Part shown: positions 16,934 through 59,100 of the stretch, in pieces
Layout of the letters: the number at the start of each line of letters is the position of its first letter
Numbering within the stretch: position 1 is the stretch's first letter
From: Utricularia gibba
Taxonomy: Eukaryota; Plantae; Magnoliophyta
Assembly: GCA_002189035.1 (NCBI GenBank)
Contig: NEEC01000010.1
Span: 3,286,001-3,350,000, forward strand
Length of the DNA stretch: 64,000 nt
Direction: 5' to 3'
Translations under genes and position numbers: made by a program
Notes under the pieces: generated by a model
Databases searched by the model: none
Told to the model about the DNA's origin: nothing
Seen by the model: only the letters and a program-made list of their open reading frames with translations

Positions 16934-18408
16934 ATGGGGTTGGAACGGGATGATGAAGTGAGGGCTGCTACTGGGTCGATGGAGGATCCGCAGAAAAGAT
17001 CGATTTTTCGCTACAATTCGCCTATGGTTCAGGTTATTTTGATCGGAGTAGTGTGTTTTTGCTGCCCTGGAATGTTTAACGCCCTGTCGGGGATGGGCGG
17101 CGGGGCCAGGTTGATCCCACGGCGGCCAACAATGCAAACACTGCTCTATACACAACCTTCGCTGTTTTTGGTGTGCTCGGAGGAGGAATCTACAACGTGC
17201 TCGGCCCCAAGCTCACTTTGTTCGCAGGATGCTCGACGTATGTCCTGTACGCAGGCTCTTTTCTCTACTACAACCATTTCCATCACGAGGGATTCGCCAT
17301 TGCCGCAGGGGCGTTTCTCGGGGTTGGAGCCGGTCTTGTGTGGGCGGCTCAGGGCGCAATTATGACATCTTACCCTTCACATCGTCGGAAGGGTACTTAC
17401 ATTTCTTTGTTCTGGAGTATTTTCAACATGGGTGGAGTCATTGGAGGTTTGATCCCTTTTGTGCTGAATTTTCATAGGAGTGAGGCTGCTTCGGTGAACG
17501 ATGCCACTTATATTGGTTTCATGATCTTTATGTCCATTGGAGCTCTGATTTCCTTGTCTATACTTCATCCCAGTCGTGTGATCCGTGATGATGGATCAAG
17601 GTGTACTAATATTCATTATTCCAGTGTATCAGTCGAAGTCACTGCAATTCTCAAGCTTTTCCTCGATTGGAAGATGCTGCTTCTGGTACCCGCCTGTTGG
17701 GCAAGCAACTTCTTCTACAGTTACCAGTTCAATAATGTGAACGGTGTACTGTTCAACCTCAGAACCAGGGGATTCAACAATGTTTTCTACTGGGGTGCTC
17801 AAATGATCGGCTCTATCTTCATTGGATACATAATGGATTTTAGCTTCAAGAGTCGTCAAAAACGAGGGCTGCTTGGCATCGGCGTAGTAGCCATTCTTGG
17901 GAGCTGCATATGGGGTGGAGGCCTTGCAAATCAGCTTGGTTACAGTCGTAGCAACTTGCCAGCCGAGAAGCTAGATTTCGAGGATGGGGGCGATTTTGCA
18001 GGGCCATTCGTCTTGTATTTCTGCTACGGATTGTTGGATGCAATGTATCAAAGCATGGTTTATTGGGTGATCGGCGGCCTAGCTGATGACTCTGAGATCC
18101 TCAGCAGGTACAAAAACAAAACATAATCTTGCTCACCAGCAGCAGCTTGTGCTGATAAGGTGAGAGATCTGATGATTGGGCTATATGTTCTGTTCTCCAG
18201 GTACTCAGGATTCTACAAGGGAGTGCAAAGTGCAGGGGGAGCAGTTGCTTGGCAAGTAGACACACACAGAATTCCGTTTTTGCATGAACTGATAACAAAT
18301 TGGGCACTTATGACGTTTAGTTATCCCTTGCTGCTTCTGCTGGTACTCAAAGCTGTCAAGGATGATGCTTCCCTTGAAGGAAGAAGGCCATTCCCTAACC
18401 TCCACTGA
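16934..18408 (+). CDS. UNC93-like MFS membrane protein, 2 exons, apparent -1 frameshift at 17102-17105
   Basis: RYNSPMVQVILIGVVCFCCPGMFNALSGMGGG; WAAQGAIMTSYP; FNLRTRGFNNVFYW; SR|YSGFYKGVQSAGGAVAWQVD. Confidence 0.92.
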
Positions 18409-30147: not shown

Positions 30148-32543
30148 ATGGGATTTCTTGCGGGAAGCTGCTCTTCTGCTTCACTTGTGTGTTCACCATG
30201 GCCCCTGCATCCGCAGATGCAGCACCCACCGTTTTTGTTGACTTCCCAAAGAACGAAAAGGGAAAAAAGAGTGGTTTTCGCTACCCTGCGGGAGGAATCT
30301 GCACCAAAAGGAATGATTTGCAAGAAAAGATTGATTCTTTTTATGGGGTTTGCGATGACTCCGTTTATGAATCTAAGGGGGCAGGCTGCTGAGCAACTTT
30401 CGGCAGGTTGGTGATTCTGTTATTATCTTATTGCTTTTGAAATGTGTTATTCGACACAAAATTGTAATGCTTTTCTATGGGTTTTAGATGACACTGCTCT
30501 TGTTGATCAACAAAACAAACCTGCGGTAAACCAAATGTTATCACATGTGAATGTGATTGGAGTTCTGGGGTCTGCTGCTCTTGCCCCACTCTACTTATCA
30601 GCAAAGAAGGAAAAGGAAGCTTCAGATGCAGTTCTTGAATCTGTAAGTTATCTAGTTAAAGTTCCATTCCTTGCTTGATTTCTGTAAATGTTCCATATAA
30701 TATGATACAGCAGTGTTTTCCCTGGTCTGTGAGCAATAGATCTGAGGTTCCATTTGCGTTGTATACTGTGGTTTATTGGGCTCGTGGGGTATCAATTAAG
30801 GTGGCTTTGATGGCACAGATGAATGCTGAACTGAAGGAAAAGCAAGCCGCCATTGGTGTCCTTAAAAAGAAGCACGAGTCGGATCTTGTGAGTGAGAAGG
30901 AAGCCCGGAAAATGGAACTGGCAAAAGCCAACGAGGAGAAGGGAAAACTTCTCAGTCAAATAGAACAAGCGAATGAGATAATCTCTAGCCTGGGTGAGGA
31001 TTTGAAGTCTGAGAAAGAAATAGCTGAAGAACTTGGCAGCCTTGTCGACAGGCTAGAATCAAGCCTGCAGAAGGCCTTCGAAGAGAAAAAAGAGTTGCAG
31101 CAAGAGCTGGAATTGAAATGCAATTCTATGGAAGTGCTGGAGGAAAGGGTGAGGCTCCTCTCTTCAGAGTTAAACGAAAGGGAAGCTGTTCTTCAGAATG
31201 CAGCTTCTGAGCTTGTTGAAAAGGAAAGGGAGTTGGCTGAGTTAAGCTCTTCTTATGAGGAGGCAAGAGATGAAGTTTCTGCTCTGAAGCAGGAGATCCA
31301 AGAACTAAAGAATGCTGATTCAGAGAAAGGAAAAGAGCTGGAATCGAAAAATTCACTTTTGAGTGACCTGAATGTGGAGTTAGCTTCCACACGGGCTGAA
31401 CTTGACAAATCACGAGAAAATCTTGACACCCTTTTGAAGGAGTACGAGGATTACAAGACATCTGCGGAGATAGAAGCTGCTTCAAATGCCAATCTGCTGG
31501 TGGAGAGAGAGAAAATAGTTCAAGATCTTGAGGACCAGCTTACTGTTGCTCTAGATGATCTTCATAATCACAGAACTTTGGCCGCTGACTCCACAAAAGA
31601 AAGAGATGATTTAGCTGGTTTGCTGAGCACTGAGCTACAGAACGTGAAGAATCTGGAGCATCAACTTAAGATCACTCAAGATTCTTTAGATAAATCAACA
31701 GGTGTTGCATCCGACCTGATGAAGCAGCTTCAGTTATCAAAAACCTTGAACTCGCAACTTGAATCTCAGGCCATCAAGATGAAGGATGATTACAACAAAG
31801 CTAGAGCTTCACTTGAAAAAGATGTTACACAAACAAAACACGAGGCAGAAGTCCTAGCTGATGAGTTGAGATGGACAAAGGAGCAAGCAATAAGCTCAGA
31901 AGAAGAACTGCAAAAGTTGTCCGAAGAGCTGGCTGCGGTGGTTGAAGAACGTGACAGCCTTGAGAAGGAACTTGTCATTGCACGTACAGCGGCTGAAAAA
32001 GCTAGTCTTGATCTTCAAAAAGAAGTGACGGTTGCTTCTTCGTTGAAGAGGGAACTGAATGATTTCGAAGCTCGATTTGCAGACGAAAGGGCCGCAAAAA
32101 CCACAGTTGAGACACATTTAGAACTGGTCAAGAAGTCCCTGGACGAAATGAATCATTACGTTTCAACACTTACCAAAGAATTGGAGGCTGCAACATCTCA
32201 GATTTCCAGTTCCAAGGATGAGAAAGAAGCCCTCCAAAAAGCCCTCGAGGAACAAAAAAAACTATCCCAAGAAGCCAAAGAGAGCTTGGAAGAAGCACAC
32301 AATGTTGTCATGAGGATTGGGAAGGAGAGGGAAATGTTGGACTCGAGAGGAAAGAAACTTGAAGACGAATTAGCCGCTGCAAAAGGCGAACTTCTTCGGC
32401 TGAGGAGCGGACTGAGCACGTCGACAGCTGATCAAGAGAGCTACCCGCAAGTTGAAAATGAAACTAGCAGCAATATTCCCGTGCCCGCAAGAAGAGCTGC
32501 TAGGAGGAGAAAGGTCACAGCTTCTCAGAGAGAAGGGTCATAG
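30148..32543 (+). CDS. MFP1: MAR-binding filament-like protein 1, chloroplastic coiled-coil protein, 3 exons
   Basis: MGFLAGSC transit peptide, hydrophobic IGVLGSAALAPLY segment, about 580-aa coiled coil, GKKLEDELAAAKGELLRLRS and C-terminal RRAARRRK. Confidence 0.88.
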
Positions 32544-32925
32544 TAGAGACACTACACCCCGTCGCATGCACCACTGATCATCCATATAATCAACTCGGGA
32601 ACAGTACTTCATTCCTTTGTGAGGGATTGAGATATCTTGTTAACTGTTTTGGTTATTTTGTATGCAAAAAATATTAAATACACAACAAAACATTGGGAAA
32701 CAAACCTATTTTTCTCCGAAGAATTCAACCAAAAGAACCTTGTCCCAGGAATGCGAATCCGCCACTCCAGAACCACATCTAATTCATTTGGTAGTGATTC
32801 TTAATGCGAGTTGCCTACGTAAGTGATTTGATTCGTTTACCCACTTTATGCATTTGGATGGTTTTCGTAATCTACTGCCACACTTTATATTCCAAGACTC
32901 TGCTCCCGCAAGAAGTTGTGACGCA

Positions 32926-33186
32926 ATGAAGAACTTCAAACCTCAACTTCTTCTCGTTTTGCTCACACTAGTTGCCATCACGGGCACGGCGGTTCTGGAT
33001 TCCCCACCTCCGCCGCCGCCGCCAACATTTTCAGTCTGTTTCCACACTTGCCTGGGAGAATGCCCCTATGACAAATACGATTGCTACAACTGCTGCTTCT
33101 CTGAATGCGCTGCCGGAAGGTTTCGCAACGGCTGTCTCCGGTCCCCCCTCCGCCGCTCCACGGCGGCAAAAAGGGTCATTAAATAA
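32926..33186 (+). CDS. Secreted cysteine-rich peptide, copy 1 (signal peptide, poly-Pro, 8 Cys)
   Basis: MKNFKPQLLLVLLTLVAITGTAVL signal-like N-terminus, then CFHTCLGECPYDKYDCYNCCFSECAAGRFRNGC. Paralog 400 bp downstream has the same Cys pattern. Confidence 0.85.
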   Translation: MKNFKPQLLLVLLTLVAITGTAVLDSPPPPPPPTFSVCFHTCLGECPYDKYDCYNCCFSECAAGRFRNGCLRSPLRRSTAAKRVIK

Positions 33187-33430
33187 GGAGGCAGCTGGAG
33201 GCGTCGGCTTTGATAGAGTTACTACTGTTAGGTGGGCGCCTTTGTTGTTTTCCACCCCCAACCAGGAACCAATAAACTCATGCGTTGGAAGAAAAAATAT
33301 TATTATTATTGGAATATATTTTGGAATAAAAAGGTTGAAAATTCAAGCAAAATGGACGTCGGCATAATTAGTCATTCTTCAACGCGTTAATTATTATTAA
33401 TTTTGTTTCTCAACAAGGGATGAAAAACAA

Positions 33431-33548
33431 AGTCAACCAACGAAATTATATAATTAATATATTAAACGTGCAAAAATCAATTTTTTTTTTAAGTTCGGAA
33501 GAGGAAAAGTCAACTATTTCAGTCTCCGGTCCTAACTATAAATACCGC
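33431..33548 (+). promoter_or_regulatory. Two W-boxes (AGTCAA) and a TATA box upstream of CRP copy 2
   Basis: AGTCAA at 33431-33436 and 33508-33513. TATAAATA about 45 bp before the ATG. Confidence 0.5.
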
Positions 33549-33584
33549 TGCTGCTGCTGCTTACAGTAAGCCGTACAAGAAGCA

Positions 33585-33869
33585 ATGCAAATGGAGAGCG
33601 TCAAGCCTCAGCTCCTTGTTTTCGTGATGCTAACGGTCATCTTCATGTCCGACACAGCGGTCCTAGCTTTGACGGTGCCGCCGCCGCGGATGCCATCATA
33701 TTCCGTTTGTTTCCGTACTTGCCTGAGAGACTGCCCGTATCCTAGATACGATTGCTATAACTGCTGCTTCACTGCCTGCGCCAGCGGAAGGTTTCCTGGT
33801 TCCTACGGCTGTCTCGGGTCTCCGCCTCCGCCGCACCACCCTGGCCGGAAAGTCATCGAGAGGTTGTAG
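33585..33869 (+). CDS. Secreted cysteine-rich peptide, copy 2
   Basis: MQMESVKPQLLVFVMLTVIFMSDTAVLA signal-like N-terminus, then CFRTCLRDCPYPRYDCYNCCFTACASGRFPGSYGC with Pro-rich flanks. Confidence 0.87.
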   Translation: MQMESVKPQLLVFVMLTVIFMSDTAVLALTVPPPRMPSYSVCFRTCLRDCPYPRYDCYNCCFTACASGRFPGSYGCLGSPPPPHHPGRKVIERL

Positions 33870-34118: not shown

Positions 34119-34937
34119 ATGTCGGGACCCAAGAAAATATACTGCGGGATCGGGGTGGAGGTCAAGAACCCAGATCCCGTTTTCAAGAATCTGAGCAGTG
34201 CCGATGGGAAAAGCTCGAGTCTTGGAGCCGATAACGCGAAACCCTTCAAGATTTTCATAGGTTACGATCCGCGAGAGGATCTTGCTTACGAGGTATGCCG
34301 CTATTCTTTACTGAAAAGGTCGTCAATCCCAGTTGAAATCATCCCGATTAAGCAAAGTGAGTTACGGGAAAGGGGCGTTTATTGGCGCAGCAGAGGGGAA
34401 TTGGAGAGTACAGAGTTCTCATTTACTCGTTTCTTGACCCCATACTTGGCCGGCTTCAATGGCTGGGCGATGTTCATAGACTGCGAGTTCCTATACAAGA
34501 GCGATATCAAAGAACTGATCGATTTAATCGATGATAAGTACTCCATTATGTGTGTTAAGCATGATCATGAAACGATGAAAATGGATGGGGTTGTGCAGAG
34601 CCCCAGAAAGAACTGGTCTTCAATGGTGCTGTACAACTGCGGGCATTCCAAGACCAAGATCTTGACACCAGAAGTCGTGAACAAGGAGAGTGAAGCTTTT
34701 CTGCACGGATTTCAATGGCTGGATGATGATGAGATTGGTGAAGTGCCATTTGTGTGGAACTTTCTTGTTGGGCACAATGCATTTGTTTCAGGGGATGCTG
34801 CAGCTCTCCCCAAGGCTTTACATTTTACGCAAGGAGGGCCCTGGTTTGTGCAATGGAAGAACTGTGAGTTTGGGGATCTTTGGTTTGCAGAGATGGAGGA
34901 ATACAAGAAGTCTGGGAAGGCTTCAGATGAAGGCTGA
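34119..34937 (+). CDS. CDI: CDI-like glycosyltransferase, intronless, divergent (DCE for DCD, two in-frame deletions)
   Basis: IFIGYDPREDLAYEVC; ESTEFSFTRFLTP; PRKNWSSMVLYNCGH; HFTQGGPWF. Confidence 0.9.
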   Translation: MSGPKKIYCGIGVEVKNPDPVFKNLSSADGKSSSLGADNAKPFKIFIGYDPREDLAYEVCRYSLLKRSSIPVEIIPIKQSELRERGVYWRSRGELESTEFSFTRFLTPYLAGFNGWAMFIDCEFLYKSDIKELIDLIDDKYSIMCVKHDHETMKMDGVVQSPRKNWSSMVLYNCGHSKTKILTPEVVNKESEAFLHGFQWLDDDEIGEVPFVWNFLVGHNAFVSGDAAALPKALHFTQGGPWFVQWKNCEFGDLWFAEMEEYKKSGKASDEG

Positions 34938-50643: not shown

Positions 50644-53175
50644 TCACACTCTCTCCATGGACACTGCTTCGGTTCCACATTCCCCTTGGGCACACCCCAT
50701 TTGAAATCTGCGGAAACCGTCAAGAATTGCTACTGCAGCATCATCATCATCCTGCAGTTGAGAAGAGTCACAAATGATCCATTTGTCGACAATGAACTGG
50801 TGTGGATATTGTTGATGCATACCCTTCTGGCTTAACTCCAGTTCTGCAACCCAGTAATGGAGCTGTTTGGATACACATTCAGAACCTGTAGAGCCATAAG
50901 AGGAAAAGTTCCTGATGGAATTTTCCACCCCAAGGAAGTTTGACACATCCTCTTCGAATGCAGGACTTATGGTTCTGAGATCCTCCAGCTTCAGGTGTTG
51001 AAGAAGACAGTTTCTTGATACACACAGAGCAACACACCTTCCAACTATGTCATGGGAAGTTCTGAAAGGTATTCCCTGCAGATTTATTAAAAGAAAAAAT
51101 AAAACAAAAGCCCCACTTCAGAAAACCATCTAGTTCCTGTAAGAACTAAATTTATCAAGCACATCCTCAATGTGTATCATTTAGAAATTTAAAAATTTTC
51201 CATATACCGATTGATTCTCGCTTCTTCATGGATTTGAAATCCATGATGGAAAAAATAATATAAGGACCCTAAACAAGATTAAGTTCTACAAAGATAAAAC
51301 AAAGTGCATATGAACATGCTGTGACCTTCATGGGCAAGTATGGAAGCGACTCACCTTTTTGACAAGGTAGTCGGCAAGGGTTGTGGCATCTAAATGGCCA
51401 GCAGGAAGAGCTTTCATGATTCTCTCCTTATTAAAGGTGATATTATCTGCGAATTCTGCAGACACCTCTAGCATTGCTAAGATTGTTTTAACACTGTCGA
51501 ATAGTGGTTGTTTATCTTCCTGATCCAAAGCAAATCAGATTCACAAGCAATCAGCTGTAATATGAAGATGAATAATTTCATTTTCAGAGGAAGGAGGTTG
51601 CAACCTGCAAATCTCTATTGTATGCTTGAGGAAGACCTTTGCACAGTACAAGTACTGAAACCAGATCTCCAACTACCCGGGCTGATTTTCCACGTACAAG
51701 TTCCATTGGATCAGGATTCTTTTTCTGAGGCATTATACTGCTTCCGGTAGACACAGAATCGCTGGGAGTGATAAAGCCAAATTCTTCTGATGCCCATAAA
51801 ACCCACTCTTCACCCAGTCGAGAGAGATGGTTGGCTATGATAGCATCTGCCGAGAGAAGTTCCAGTACAAAATCTCGATCCGAAACCGCATCAATGCTGT
51901 TTCACAAAAAAATCAACAAGTTTCTACCTCTGCTATAAAATAAGTACTATTACACCTGTACAATTCATGTTTCACTAATCCATCCAAAAGAATGCAAGAG
52001 CTCTCTTTTAAGAAATGAATGAACCATGGTTGATGATTTGTACCTATTTCTGAGGGGTGCAGTGAATCCCAATTCATTAGAAGTCATAAACCTATCAATA
52101 GGGAGGCCAGTGCCAGCCAAAGCACAGGCACCCAAGGGACTGAAATTCAATCTTGCTCGGCAGTCTAGCAAACGGCCGGTGTCACGTTGAAGCTGCAGCA
52201 TATCAGCATATAGTGCATCAATGATATGAAAATTCACATGAAAAATGTCTAAGAGAAGAATTGGATGCTAACATGGCACACTGAAAAAGAAGAATTTACC
52301 TGCTCAACATAAGCTAAGAGAAGATGTGGCAAAAGAACAGGTTGGGCCCTCTGAAGATGAGTATACCCTGGAACAATCAGGTCCTCATACTTCAACGCCA
52401 ACTTCACCAAAGCAACCTGGGAATTTCGAAGTTTAAGAAAGCCCACAACTGATCTCGTAGGAAATGAGTTGCATAAGCACATTAAACATGGTAAATTACG
52501 GATCTTGGTGGCTAGTCTACTGATACCACAAAGTTGAATAGAGCAAAAAGGAACCTGAAGATGCCTGATACGAGAAATGATTGAGTCGATTGCATCTCTA
52601 GACCACAATCTCAAATCTGTGCAGACTTGATCATTTCTGCTACGGGCAGTGTGAAGCTTCTTTGCCGGCTCGCCAACCAAATCTGTAAGGGCTGCTTCAA
52701 TGTTCATATGGACGTCCTCCCTATTAGCCCTCCAAATGAACTCGCCTCTCTCTATCTGCTTCTGAATCTCATCCAAACCCTTGAGTATCGTATCCCGATC
52801 ATCATCACTAATCAATCCCTGTAACCCATCTTCAGATTGCAATCGCAAAAAGACCAAAACTTCAACAAAAAGAAAACTCAAATGCACCTGATTAGCGAGC
52901 ATTGAGGCGTGGGCGCGGCTGCCCATAATGTCATGCTTATACAGGGCTTTGTCAAAAGATATTGACTCAGTGAAGCTCTCAACAGCGTCGGTGACGCTCT
53001 CTTCAAATCGGCCCCCCCAAAGCTTCGCCTCCTTGGAGCTCATCTTCACGGATACGATGTGGCTTCGACGACCTTGCGATGGCAAGGCGGCGACGGCGGC
53101 GGGGATTCGGACAACCCCGGAAGAAAAAGGGTTGGTGGGCGGAGTTGGCGCTAGCCGCTGGAGCATCGAGTCCAT
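50644..53175 (-). CDS. ARGH: Argininosuccinate lyase, chloroplastic, 7 exons
   Basis: KLWGGRF; [12 protein letters not shown]; [11 protein letters not shown]; signature [14 protein letters not shown]; [12 protein letters not shown]. The stop lies about 55 codons later than usual. Confidence 0.96.
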
Positions 53176-53334
53176 AGAAACTCGCAGCAAATTGTTGACA
53201 ATTGACTGGGTTTAGTCCAAACCCCAAGCCCGTCTATACACATGCCCACCTGCCAAATCAGTATATATGGTTTCCAACGCTCGATGTAAAGTTCAGAATT
53301 CTTCTCCTTTGGCAGCTGTGTGAAATTTTGCATT

Positions 53335-55819: not shown

Positions 55820-55878
55820 GACCGTTGGTGAGAGAGAATATGCGGGTTTTATTTCCATAAATTCTTTCGACCGTTGCG
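55820..55878 (-). promoter_or_regulatory. Two MSA-like elements (AACGG core) upstream of the 54201-55689 gene
   Basis: GACCGTTGG at 55820 and GACCGTTGC at 55869, about 130-190 bp upstream of the ATG. Confidence 0.55.
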
Positions 55879-56155
55879 GTGGGAAGATCAGAAATGGCAT
55901 TTAGTGTTTTTGTGGGGTAAATATGAAATTTTCGTATTTAAGCTACCGTACTGGGCCTATAAATCCATGGCTCAATGGTGGCCCATATTGTTTGGCGAGG
56001 GGAGGGCCTTTATAAACACATCTTCTCATTTTGTTAGGGCGGCCCAAATCCTATTTCTCTTGTCAAAAACAAAAATAGAACCTCTCTTTCTGAAGTTCAG
56101 ACTCGGAAACTCAAGGGCACAGAATCGAGGAGGTAGAAGGAACTTGCCGTCGAAG

Positions 56156-59100
56156 ATGTTAATTTCCCAAGAACTGTACCCGAGTGAAGAAGATTATCTC
56201 TACGAGGAGGAAGTGCTTCGGAATCCCAACAGTTTGAAGCTATGGTGGCGTTATCTGATTGCTCGAAGTGAATCGCCGTTCAAGAAACGTGCTGTTATCT
56301 ACGAGCGCGCACTCAAGGCTTTGCCGGGAAGCTACAAGCTATGGCATGCCTATCTCAGGGAGCGGTTGGAGATTGTGAGGAATTTGCCAGTGACGCATTC
56401 TCAGTACGAGACGCTGAATAACACTTTTGAACGGGCTCTCGCTACAATGCACAAGATGCCCCGGATTTGGATTATGTATCTCACGTCTTTGACGCAACAG
56501 AAGTTGATTACCAAGACAAGGCGGACTTTTGATCGTGCGTTATGCGCTCTCCCGGTTACACAGCATGATAGGATTTGGGAGCATTATTTGATTTTCGTGT
56601 CGCAAAAGGGTTGCCCAATAGAGACCTCTTTGAGAGTGTACAGGAGGTATTTGAAGTATGACCCGAGTCACATTGAAGATTTTATTGACTTTTTGATTGC
56701 TTCTGAGCTGTGGCAGGAGGCAGCAGAGAGGCTCGCGGGGGTTTTGAACGATGACCAATTTCATTCGATCAAGGGGAAAACAAAGCATAGATTGTGGTTG
56801 GAATTGTGTGATTTGTTGACGCAGCATGCTAAGGAGATATCTGGATTGAATGTGGATGCTATAATTAGAGGAGGTGTTAGGAAGTTCACAGATGAGGTTG
56901 GTAGGCTGTGGACATCTCTGGCAGATTATTACATACGGAGAGGTTTACTCGAGAAAGCCAGAGATATTTTCGAGGAGGGAATAACTACAGTGATCAGAGT
57001 GAGGGACTTCAGTGTCATATTTGATGCATACTCGCAGTTTGAAGAGAGCATGCTCCTCATTAGAATGGAAGCTGTAGATGATAGTGATAATGAAGATGGT
57101 GAAGAAAATGTGCAGGAGAAGGATGAGGAAGAAGAGGATGATGACAGGTTAGATATAGAGAAGTTGGAGAAGCGGATAAGCAGTTTTTGGTTGAAAGATG
57201 ACAATGATGTTGACTTGAGATTGGCACGGTTCGAGTACTTGATGGAAAGGAGGCCAGAGTTGGCAAACAGCGTGCTTTTGAGGCAGAATCCACACAATGT
57301 GGAACAGTGGCATCGGAGGGTCAAGCTTTTTGAAGATCCCACCAAACAAATAATTACTTACACAGAAGCAGTGAGGACAGTTGATCCCATGAAGGCTGTT
57401 GGCAAACCCCATACCCTTTGGGTTGCATTTGCAAAGCTTTACGAGAGCCACAAGGATGTTGCTAATGCTCGGGTGATCTTTGACAAGGCTGTGCAGGTTA
57501 ATTATAAAACTGTAGATCATCTAGCCAGTGTTTGGTGTGAGTGGGCTGAGATGGAACTCAGGCATAAAAACTTCAAGGGCGCACTAGAACTTATGCGCCG
57601 TGCAACTGCAGAACCATCAGTCGAAGTGAGGAGGAGAGGTATTGGATCTCTTATTCCTAATTATTTATGCAATATATTCACTTTTTATAGGAAGCTGGGG
57701 AACTTTCTTCCAAATAGTTCAGCTGACTGATTTCCAACACTTTATTCCACCCCTGCTATGTAGTGGCTGCTGATGGCAATGAACCAGTGCAGATGAAGCT
57801 TCATAAATCACTTAAACTCTGGACATTCTATGTCGATCTGGAGGAGAGCTTGGGCACTCTTAAATCGACTCGTGAAGTTTATGAGAAGATACTGGATCAT
57901 AAAATTGCTACTCCTCAAATAATAATTAACTATGCTATGCTTTTAGAGGTTTGAACTTCCTGTTTAATTATTCTGTCTTTTTGCATCCTTTTCCCCTCTT
58001 GTGTAAGCTTTAATGGGTTATGATATTTTCAGGACAATAAGTACTTTGAGGATGCATTCAAGGTTTATGAGAGGGGTGTGAAGATATTCAAATACCCTCA
58101 TGTAAAGGATATCTGGGTCACTTATCTTTCAAAGTTCGTCAAAAGATATGGAAAGTCAAAGCTTGAACGAGCTCGAGAGCTATTTGAGAATGCAGTTGAA
58201 ACTGTATGGTCTGCATATCTTGTTTGACTTTAGAGTTCTGACGCTTTCTTAACACTTGAAATAAGTAATTTGTGTGTGTGTGTGTGTTTTTTTTTTTTCC
58301 CCATATTTTTATATTTGGTTGGGTGAAGTGATAGCCAGAATGATGAATGCGTTTGAGGTTATAGTTTTTGCTGTCTAATTCTTGTGTGGAAATGTTCTAC
58401 GTGCTTTTTCCAATGTAACGGTAGTGGCTATCTCTAAGTATTAATTGCATTATAGAAATGTCTCAAACTGTGATGGTGATTAATGTCTGTCATTGTGTTG
58501 ATGATATCATATGTTTTCTCGTTTCAGGCTCCTTCTGAGTATGTGAAAACTTTGTATCTCCAATATGCTAAGCTCGAGGAAGACTATGGTCTTGCAAAAA
58601 GAGCAATGCGGGTATATGATCAGGCAGCAAAGGCTGTGCCAGATAATGAGAAGTTGGGCATGTATGAAATATACATTGCAAGGGCCGCTGAAATATTTGG
58701 TGTACCCAAAACCAGGGAGATATACGAACAGGCAATTGAATCTGGTCTGCCTGAAAAGGATTTGAAGACCATGTGCTTGAGATACGCTGACCTTGAGAAG
58801 AGTCTAGGTGAGATTGATCGGAGCCGTGCACTATTGAAACATGCATCCCAATTTTCGGACCCCAGGACCGATCTGGAATTTTGGAACAAGTGGCATGAGT
58901 TTGAGGTCCAGCATGGGAATGAAGATACCTTCAGAGAGATGCTTCGGGTTAAAAGGAGCGTTACAACTAGTTATAGCCAGGTTCGGAATCATTAAGCCAG
59001 TGAATCTTCATGTCGTATACGTTCTCTTTTTAGGTTCTTCACTCACCCATCTTTGTTTTTTTTTCTGTGTCAGACGCACTTTATCTTGCCTGAGTATTTG

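Follow-up and report, generated by a model that had tools for sequence, protein, structure and literature searches.

Tandem intronless paralogues coding for putative secreted, eight-cysteine hairpin peptides in Utricularia gibba

Introduction

Two short open reading frames (ORFs) that follow each other in the genome of the bladderwort Utricularia gibba raise a twofold question: are they real genes, and if so, to which kind of cysteine-rich peptide do their products belong? Small intronless genes for Cys-rich peptides are routinely missed by plant annotation. The two frames are located in a contiguous stretch of 64 kb, which we call the window and to which all coordinates below refer. The original prediction on this locus described a tandem pair of Pro-flanked peptides with an unfamiliar spacing of the cysteines. 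Here we analyse the genes, their divergence, their relatives and the predicted structure of their products, and we ask what the peptides might do.

Results and Discussion

The locus and its gene setting

Copy 1 is found at positions 32926-33186 (+ strand) and encodes 86 amino acids, and copy 2 is found at 33585-33869 (+ strand) and encodes 94 amino acids; the coordinates were taken from the ORF list and the sequence and include the stop codon. Copy 2 has a further in-frame ATG at 33591. The proteins are 52% identical and 72% similar by BLASTP (E 2e-29), and both frames are uninterrupted, so the description of the pair as intronless tandem paralogues was correct. A third copy of the peptide gene was not found within the 64-kb window by tblastn, and no Rfam family was found at the peptide locus.

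Both ORFs sit between a coiled-coil ORF that ends at 32543 and a gene for a protein CDI that starts at 34119, all four being on the + strand. The upstream neighbour (30675-32543, +) is an open frame of 622 amino acids, rich in Glu, Lys and Leu, and probably represents the final large exon of a gene for a long coiled-coil protein; in Pfam it has sub-threshold matches only (HIP1 clathrin-binding, CALCOCO1, crescentin rod). The CDI ORF (34119-34937, +) is intronless, encodes 272 amino acids of the nucleotide-diphospho-sugar transferase superfamily without a Pfam match, and begins 249 bp past the stop of copy 2. Farther away we note large exons of the splicing factor SYF1 (55874-57730, +; HAT repeats, E 1e-83), of an UNC-93-like MFS protein (17173-18126, +) and of a Lyase_1 family enzyme (52249-53190, -). 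Judged from these three exons, the window is an ordinary gene-dense region of a plant nuclear genome.

Features of the two precursors

The N-termini are signal-like, as had been suggested. Each leader consists of a short charged stretch followed by a hydrophobic core of 12-15 residues, and the best 12-residue Kyte-Doolittle mean is 3.0-3.1. Signal peptides were called by a heuristic only, i.e. from the Kyte-Doolittle values and the (-3,-1) rule. The predicted signal peptide of copy 1 comprises residues 1-22 (32926-32991, +), with the hydrophobic core at residues 8-19 and a candidate cleavage site after ..TGTA. That of copy 2 comprises residues 1-28 (33585-33668, +), with a candidate site after ..AVLA, and this leader was modelled as a separate helix (residues 8-30).

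The eight-Cys core extends from C38 to C70 in copy 1 (33037-33135, +) and from C42 to C76 in copy 2 (33708-33812, +), and in copy 2 it is predicted to form a helix-loop-helix plus a tail Cys. The gaps between the cysteines are as first noted, i.e. 3, 3, 6, 2, 0, 3, 8 in copy 1 and 3, 3, 6, 2, 0, 3, 10 in copy 2. The Pro-rich flanks are a more complicated matter. Copy 1 has an N-terminal Ser-Pro7 tract (S26-P33; 33001-33024, +) that resembles the extensin-type SPPPP motif, and copy 2 has a C-terminal SPPPP motif (S79-P83; 33819-33833, +). The description of the peptides as Pro-flanked holds on both sides of the core in copy 2, but in copy 1 it does not extend to the C-terminal side, where the SPPPP stretch is read out of frame. 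We considered whether the proteins could be extensin-like hydroxyproline-rich glycoproteins and rejected this, because each has a single SP(n) motif and no repeats; the motif is a possible glycomodule.

The predicted mature parts are 62-66 residues long and hydrophilic (GRAVY about -0.4), with a net charge of about +4 in copy 1 and +5 in copy 2 and a pI of 8.7-8.9. The tails are indeed basic and carry most of the positive charge, whereas in copy 1 the Cys core by itself has a slight negative charge (-1.5). A membrane-active, cationic mode of action is thus not obvious for this core.

Divergence and coding constraint

At the DNA level, positions 33007-33161 of copy 1 and 33678-33839 of copy 2 are 78% identical over 155-162 nt (E about 3e-34). 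There is no detectable similarity between the flanks of the two copies (380-400 bp upstream as well as the downstream stretches), where the best matches are 11-13 nt long with E values above 0.04. As the flanks cannot be aligned, the duplication is so old that any similarity in neutral DNA has since been lost. Over the 86 aligned codons there are 86 nucleotide differences, distributed as 23/23/40 by codon position.

Constraint was evaluated with a permutation test in which an equal number of differences was placed at random, keeping the observed share of transitions. For the whole ORF, 39 or fewer amino acid changes (39 were observed) arose in 0.06% of the trials, and all eight cysteines were kept in 0.005%. 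For the Cys core by itself the corresponding values were 0.7% (amino acid changes) and 0.8% (all Cys kept). With the NG86 method, dN/dS was 0.26 over the whole ORF and 0.28-0.43 in the core. YN00 put the core (36-47 codons) at 0.7-1.0. Since the two methods disagree in the short core, pairwise dN/dS is not sufficient by itself for a claim of constraint. In other words, the purifying selection that had been proposed is better supported by the permutation test and by the unalignable flanks than by the pairwise ratios, which are noisy. The two copies are real tandem paralogues, intact and under coding constraint.

The synonymous divergence is uneven along the gene: the NG86 dS is about 1.9 in the leader (32926-33010 vs 33585-33680) and about 0.5 in the Cys core. 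Moreover, none of the eight Cys codons has a synonymous difference. Such a pattern may reflect partial gene conversion or a constraint at the nucleotide level.

Out of seven indels between the copies, five are multiples of three and the other two compensate each other in the DNA alignment. Relative to copy 2, copy 1 has a 1-nt deletion followed by a 1-nt insertion about 27 nt further on. The segment of the copy 1 tail at 33147-33174 (+) is consequently out of frame with respect to copy 2, although its DNA still aligns to the stretch that encodes SPPPPHH in copy 2. The tail of copy 1 (33140-33180) thus reads SPLRRST where copy 2 (33815-33860) has SPPPPHH, and it is because of this compensated frameshift that copy 1 lacks the C-terminal Pro tract. 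Both tails remain basic and rejoin at V-I. The frameshifted tail of copy 1 could be an early sign of decay.

Relatives in sequence databases

The database searches were for the most part blank. No Pfam family was matched by the full proteins at E values up to 1, nor by the isolated cores at E values up to 10. Neither copy 2 nor a two-sequence profile found a match up to E 10 in a word-index search of proteins. Four start variants of the peptides, looked up as exact sequences, are absent from a collection of 15 billion proteins, and no relative was seen in a scan of the JGI metagenomes. When both profiles were run against the PDB sequences at E 10, only two matches came up, both by chance and via the leader.

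The exception came from a full HMMER scan of 1.84 billion representative sequences with the two-sequence profile, which produced two matches (P0001 and P0002). We discarded P0001, a Cys-free repeat protein, as spurious. P0002, the sole non-spurious sequence match, is the hypothetical protein KAL9686187.1 of Rhodiola kirilowii (E 8.6e-5, a value summed over four weak repeats); a profile-sequence comparison by hhalign assigned it a probability of only 33%. This protein of 275 amino acids has a signal peptide and four near-identical repeats of 65 residues, each with a double CX3CX3C module. The modules follow the pattern C-x3-C-x3-C-x6/8-C-x3-C-x3-C, and the loop of module 4 is 6 residues long as in both of our copies. 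The pattern common to these modules and both cores is [FY]xxCFxxCxx[ED]CP...[DN]CxxxCxxxC..F.N. The agreement goes beyond the cysteines: it includes the aromatic residue three positions before C1, the F after C1 and the [ED]-C-P that ends helix 1, and furthermore the [DN] that precedes the first helix 2 Cys and the F.N after the last Cys. The Rhodiola protein differs from the pair in being multimodular, with six cysteines per module, and its modules are acidic/Lys-rich and have no Pro tracts. A remote kinship between the pair and these 6C hairpin modules is plausible on the basis of the shared pattern. In Pfam, the Rhodiola protein itself has a partial TIL match (39.7 bits) and a sub-threshold Ole_e_6 match (18.5 bits vs a cut-off of 27.7).

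In the ESM Atlas the nearest cluster was that of the 'BnaA07g00450D protein' (83 amino acids, 118 plant members), with a score of 0.90 for the whole protein (191 shared features) and of 0.79 for the mature part, for which it was again the nearest. This cluster is named in no paper that we found. A 'Thionin-like protein 2'/Ole_e_6 cluster scored 0.83, and an 'Acidic protein' cluster was also listed.

How the blank searches should be read can be judged from the neighbouring gene. The CDI protein is most similar to proteins of Sesamum latifolium (72%) and other Lamiales and to a partial protein of Genlisea aurea (75%), and nothing comes near 100%; the window thus belongs to a Lamiales plant, probably of the Lentibulariaceae. 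Since the best match reaches only 72-75%, the protein collections do not hold the source species, and the absence of the peptides from them therefore says little. The searches show that there is nothing recognisably similar among the annotated or assembled proteins elsewhere, but close relatives may still have the gene. A lineage-specific family is possible on this evidence.

The cysteine framework and the 6C alpha-hairpinins

Six of the eight cysteines form a familiar arrangement. C1, C2 and C3 together with C4, C6 and C7 spell CX3CX3C-X6-CX3CX3C in both copies, and the motif of the 6C alpha-hairpinins is CX3CX3C-X(4-20)-CX3CX3C (PMC11591084). The spacing had been called unfamiliar, but the six-Cys core in fact falls into this published motif class (PMC11591084), with the peculiarity that one 'X' position of helix 2 is itself a Cys. 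A survey of the 1KP transcriptomes predicted a total of 1069 6C alpha-hairpinins, of which 54 have a loop of 6 residues; Nigellin-1.1 (PDB 2NB2) is a member with a solved structure (PMC11591084). The curation rules of that survey allow at most 1-2 extra cysteines outside the core and exclude a CC on either side of it (PMC11591084, Table 1). Compared with these rules (PMC11591084), the pair has two extra cysteines, one of which is within the core and forms a CC, a case on which the rules are silent. The DCYNCC core is absent from the peptides in the supplement of PMC11591084, and the PDB sequence search (E 10) gave no sequence kinship with a characterised 6C alpha-hairpinin.

The pair has in common with the 6C alpha-hairpinins the core motif, a loop whose length of 6 is within the range of 4-20, the predicted helix-loop-helix, the signal peptide and the small size. 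The differences are of three kinds. The pair has two extra cysteines, one in helix 2 (the CC pair) and one 8-10 residues downstream, and because of these a fourth disulfide is expected. It also has Pro-rich flanks with SPPPP-type tracts. Furthermore, its precursors contain a single module, whereas the characterised precursors are vicilin-linked or multimodular (PMC7191063). According to a 2020 review of the alpha-hairpinins, a precursor composed of a signal peptide, one hairpin and a C-terminal tail was still to be found (PMC7191063); many single-module candidates have been predicted since, in the 2024 transcriptome survey (PMC11591084). As far as the motif and the modelled fold go, both of which fit, the peptides are a modest variation on the helical-hairpin scaffold, with no recognisable sequence kinship to a characterised member.

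Predicted structure

The AlphaFold models were built from an input alignment of the two paralogues only and have a mean pLDDT of 64-65. In the full-length model of copy 2, the leader helix (residues 8-30) is followed by helices at 39-49 and 54-66, and the pLDDT of this block is 78-81. When the mature part of copy 2 was modelled alone, helices were predicted at residues 11-21 and 26-38 with a core pLDDT of 74-79, and a short turn (47-50) was placed around C8, while the pLDDT of the tail was below 50. The original prediction of two CxxxCxxxC helices packed as a hairpin that leaves C5 and C8 for a fourth bond agrees with both models (core pLDDT 74-81). From the i, i+4, i+8 spacing and the nested pairing of the alpha-hairpinins we infer, by analogy, the disulfides C1-C7, C2-C6, C3-C4 and C5-C8.

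As fold relatives, Foldseek and VIA-align, run with both models, turned up nothing more specific than small helical domains (Z at most 4, Foldseek E above 6). For a hairpin of about 30 residues such generic matches are uninformative.

Comparison with other families

Several other groups of small peptides were compared with the pair. Ole e 6 has two antiparallel helices, six cysteines and a long unstructured tail (PMC8198727), and the pair resembles it in the predicted helices and in the low-confidence tail. On the other hand, Ole e 6 is acidic with six cysteines, whereas the pair is basic with eight cysteines and Pro-rich flanks, and the Ole_e_6 model (Pfam PF09253) gave no match, even when the cores alone were searched at E 10.

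With the classical thionins and thionin-like peptides of plants the pair shares the small size, the basic charge and the richness in Cys, as well as the predicted secretion and the predicted pair of helices. We rejected a classical thionin, as the N-terminal CC and the acidic 6-Cys C-terminal prodomain are missing and there is no Pfam thionin match; the tails of the pair are basic, with no Cys after C8. The mature peptide of TAXIMIN, a lead from the ESM Atlas, is hydrophobic, is 46 residues long and has six cysteines and three conserved prolines, and the gene has two exons (PMC4526920). It was rejected too, since the pair has eight cysteines, a hydrophilic mature part of 62-66 residues and no intron. 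Finally, the fungal and insect 'hairpin loop peptides' are hydrophobic, uncharged and said to be absent from plants, and as a family we regard them as an analogue only (PMC13357843).

Possible mode of action

Our preferred reading, in which we have moderate confidence, is that the locus comprises two real, intronless genes in tandem, whose products are small hairpin peptides that are secreted, rich in disulfides and most likely active in defence. Signal-peptide cleavage, disulfide pairing, Hyp modification, secretion and the biological role are steps that we infer. The leader would be cleaved in the ER. The mature peptide would fold into two short antiparallel helices with cysteines at i, i+4 and i+8, locked by the nested bonds C1-C7, C2-C6 and C3-C4 as in the six-Cys alpha-hairpinins and Ole e 6. 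A fourth bond between C5 in helix 2 and C8 in the tail would fasten the C-terminal tail to the hairpin. Prolyl hydroxylation and arabinosylation would probably take place at the Ser-Pro(n) tracts that adjoin the core; SPPPP motifs are established Hyp-arabinosylation sites. The resulting cationic peptide of about 7 kDa would be exported to the apoplast or into a secretion, where it may act in defence, as an antimicrobial or a protease inhibitor, by analogy with the alpha-hairpinins that have been tested (PMC7191063).

A different role is conceivable for the same kind of molecule. The peptides might be extracellular signalling ligands, reproductive or cell-to-cell, in which the hairpin is recognised by a receptor and defence plays no part. 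Many plant Cys-rich peptides are receptor ligands, and Ole e 6, likewise a two-helix protein, is a pollen protein whose architecture, two antiparallel helices followed by a long tail without structure (PMC8198727), the pair would share. It is in keeping with this role that the helix faces and the loop ends are conserved while the flanks vary, and that the core of copy 1 is not cationic. Yet the failure of the Ole_e_6 model in Pfam mentioned above speaks against it, as do the divergence of 48% of the residues and the tandem duplication. Fast divergence combined with tandem duplication is more typical of defence-type Cys-rich peptides, and we consider a signalling role rather unlikely. It appears quite improbable that the pair specifically represents alpha-hairpinin-type inhibitors of trypsin-like proteases, in which K50 of copy 1 and R54 of copy 2 at the loop tip would serve as P1. 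These residues are located four positions past the last Cys of helix 1 in a loop, P-Y-x-[KR]-Y-D, that is present in both copies, and several alpha-hairpinins strongly inhibit trypsin by means of a P1 Arg in their loop. VhTI from Veronica, also of the Lamiales, is such a trypsin inhibitor, its P1 Arg15 being four residues past Cys11 (PMC7191063). However, the loop has 6 residues here vs 13 between the corresponding cysteines of VhTI, the PDB sequence search showed no similarity to known inhibitors, and conservation of a K/R in two sequences only is weak evidence.

One may also ask whether the ORFs are now non-functional, i.e. untranscribed or decaying duplicates whose frames were kept by recent history or by gene conversion. 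The absence of the sequences from all protein collections searched and the frameshifted tail of copy 1 would fit this idea, and the Cys codons without synonymous differences and the dS that is lower in the core than in the leader could reflect conversion. Against this, the flanks have diverged beyond recognition and nevertheless both frames are open, the differences are in excess at third positions and all cysteines are kept. Moreover, TATA-like elements are found 40-48 nt upstream of both ATGs, and the absence from collections without the source species carries little weight. We therefore regard non-functionality as very unlikely. The retention of two copies in a very compact genome argues for a real function.

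Returning to secreted hairpin peptides with a probable role in defence, the pair adds an eight-Cys elaboration to the alpha-hairpinin/Ole e 6-like scaffold: a single module, a presumed extra bridge from the tail to the helix, and flanks rich in Pro. Such a scaffold is also of practical interest, as a basis for stable peptides with antimicrobial or protease-inhibiting activity. Much more tentatively, and with considerable doubt on our side, the pair may stand for an uncatalogued family, confined to bladderwort relatives, that is defined by a single-module hairpin, a fourth disulfide stapling the tail to helix 2, and Hyp-glycosylated flanks. If this were true, the family would be the type of single-module precursor sought in PMC7191063, and it may be used in the secretions of a carnivorous plant. 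The pair leaves the general picture unchanged, because thousands of orphan Cys-rich peptides have already been predicted in plants.

Sequence elements around the two genes

A TATAAA motif (33537-33542, +) is found 48 nt upstream of the ATG of copy 2. The putative counterpart in copy 1 is a TATA-like element, TTTATATT (32884-32891, +), about 40 nt upstream of the ATG, and an AATAAA at 33271-33276 (+), 85 nt past the stop of copy 1, is a candidate polyadenylation signal. Two W-box cores (TTGACT) lie upstream of copy 2, at 33431-33436 (-) and 33508-33513 (-), so the TATA box and the two W-boxes first described for this copy are indeed present. The WRKY control deduced from them did not stand up, as two hexamers are no more than chance would give and copy 1 has no W-box. 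At the observed density about 0.3 W-boxes are expected in the 398-bp spacer, and the probability of at least two is about 0.04, uncorrected; pairs of W-boxes at most 100 bp apart occur at several other places in the window. As a minor observation we note that TTGACY is depleted in the window as a whole, with 51 occurrences vs 90.6 +/- 9.8 in dinucleotide-preserving shuffles, and that all 100 out of 100 shuffles contained more.
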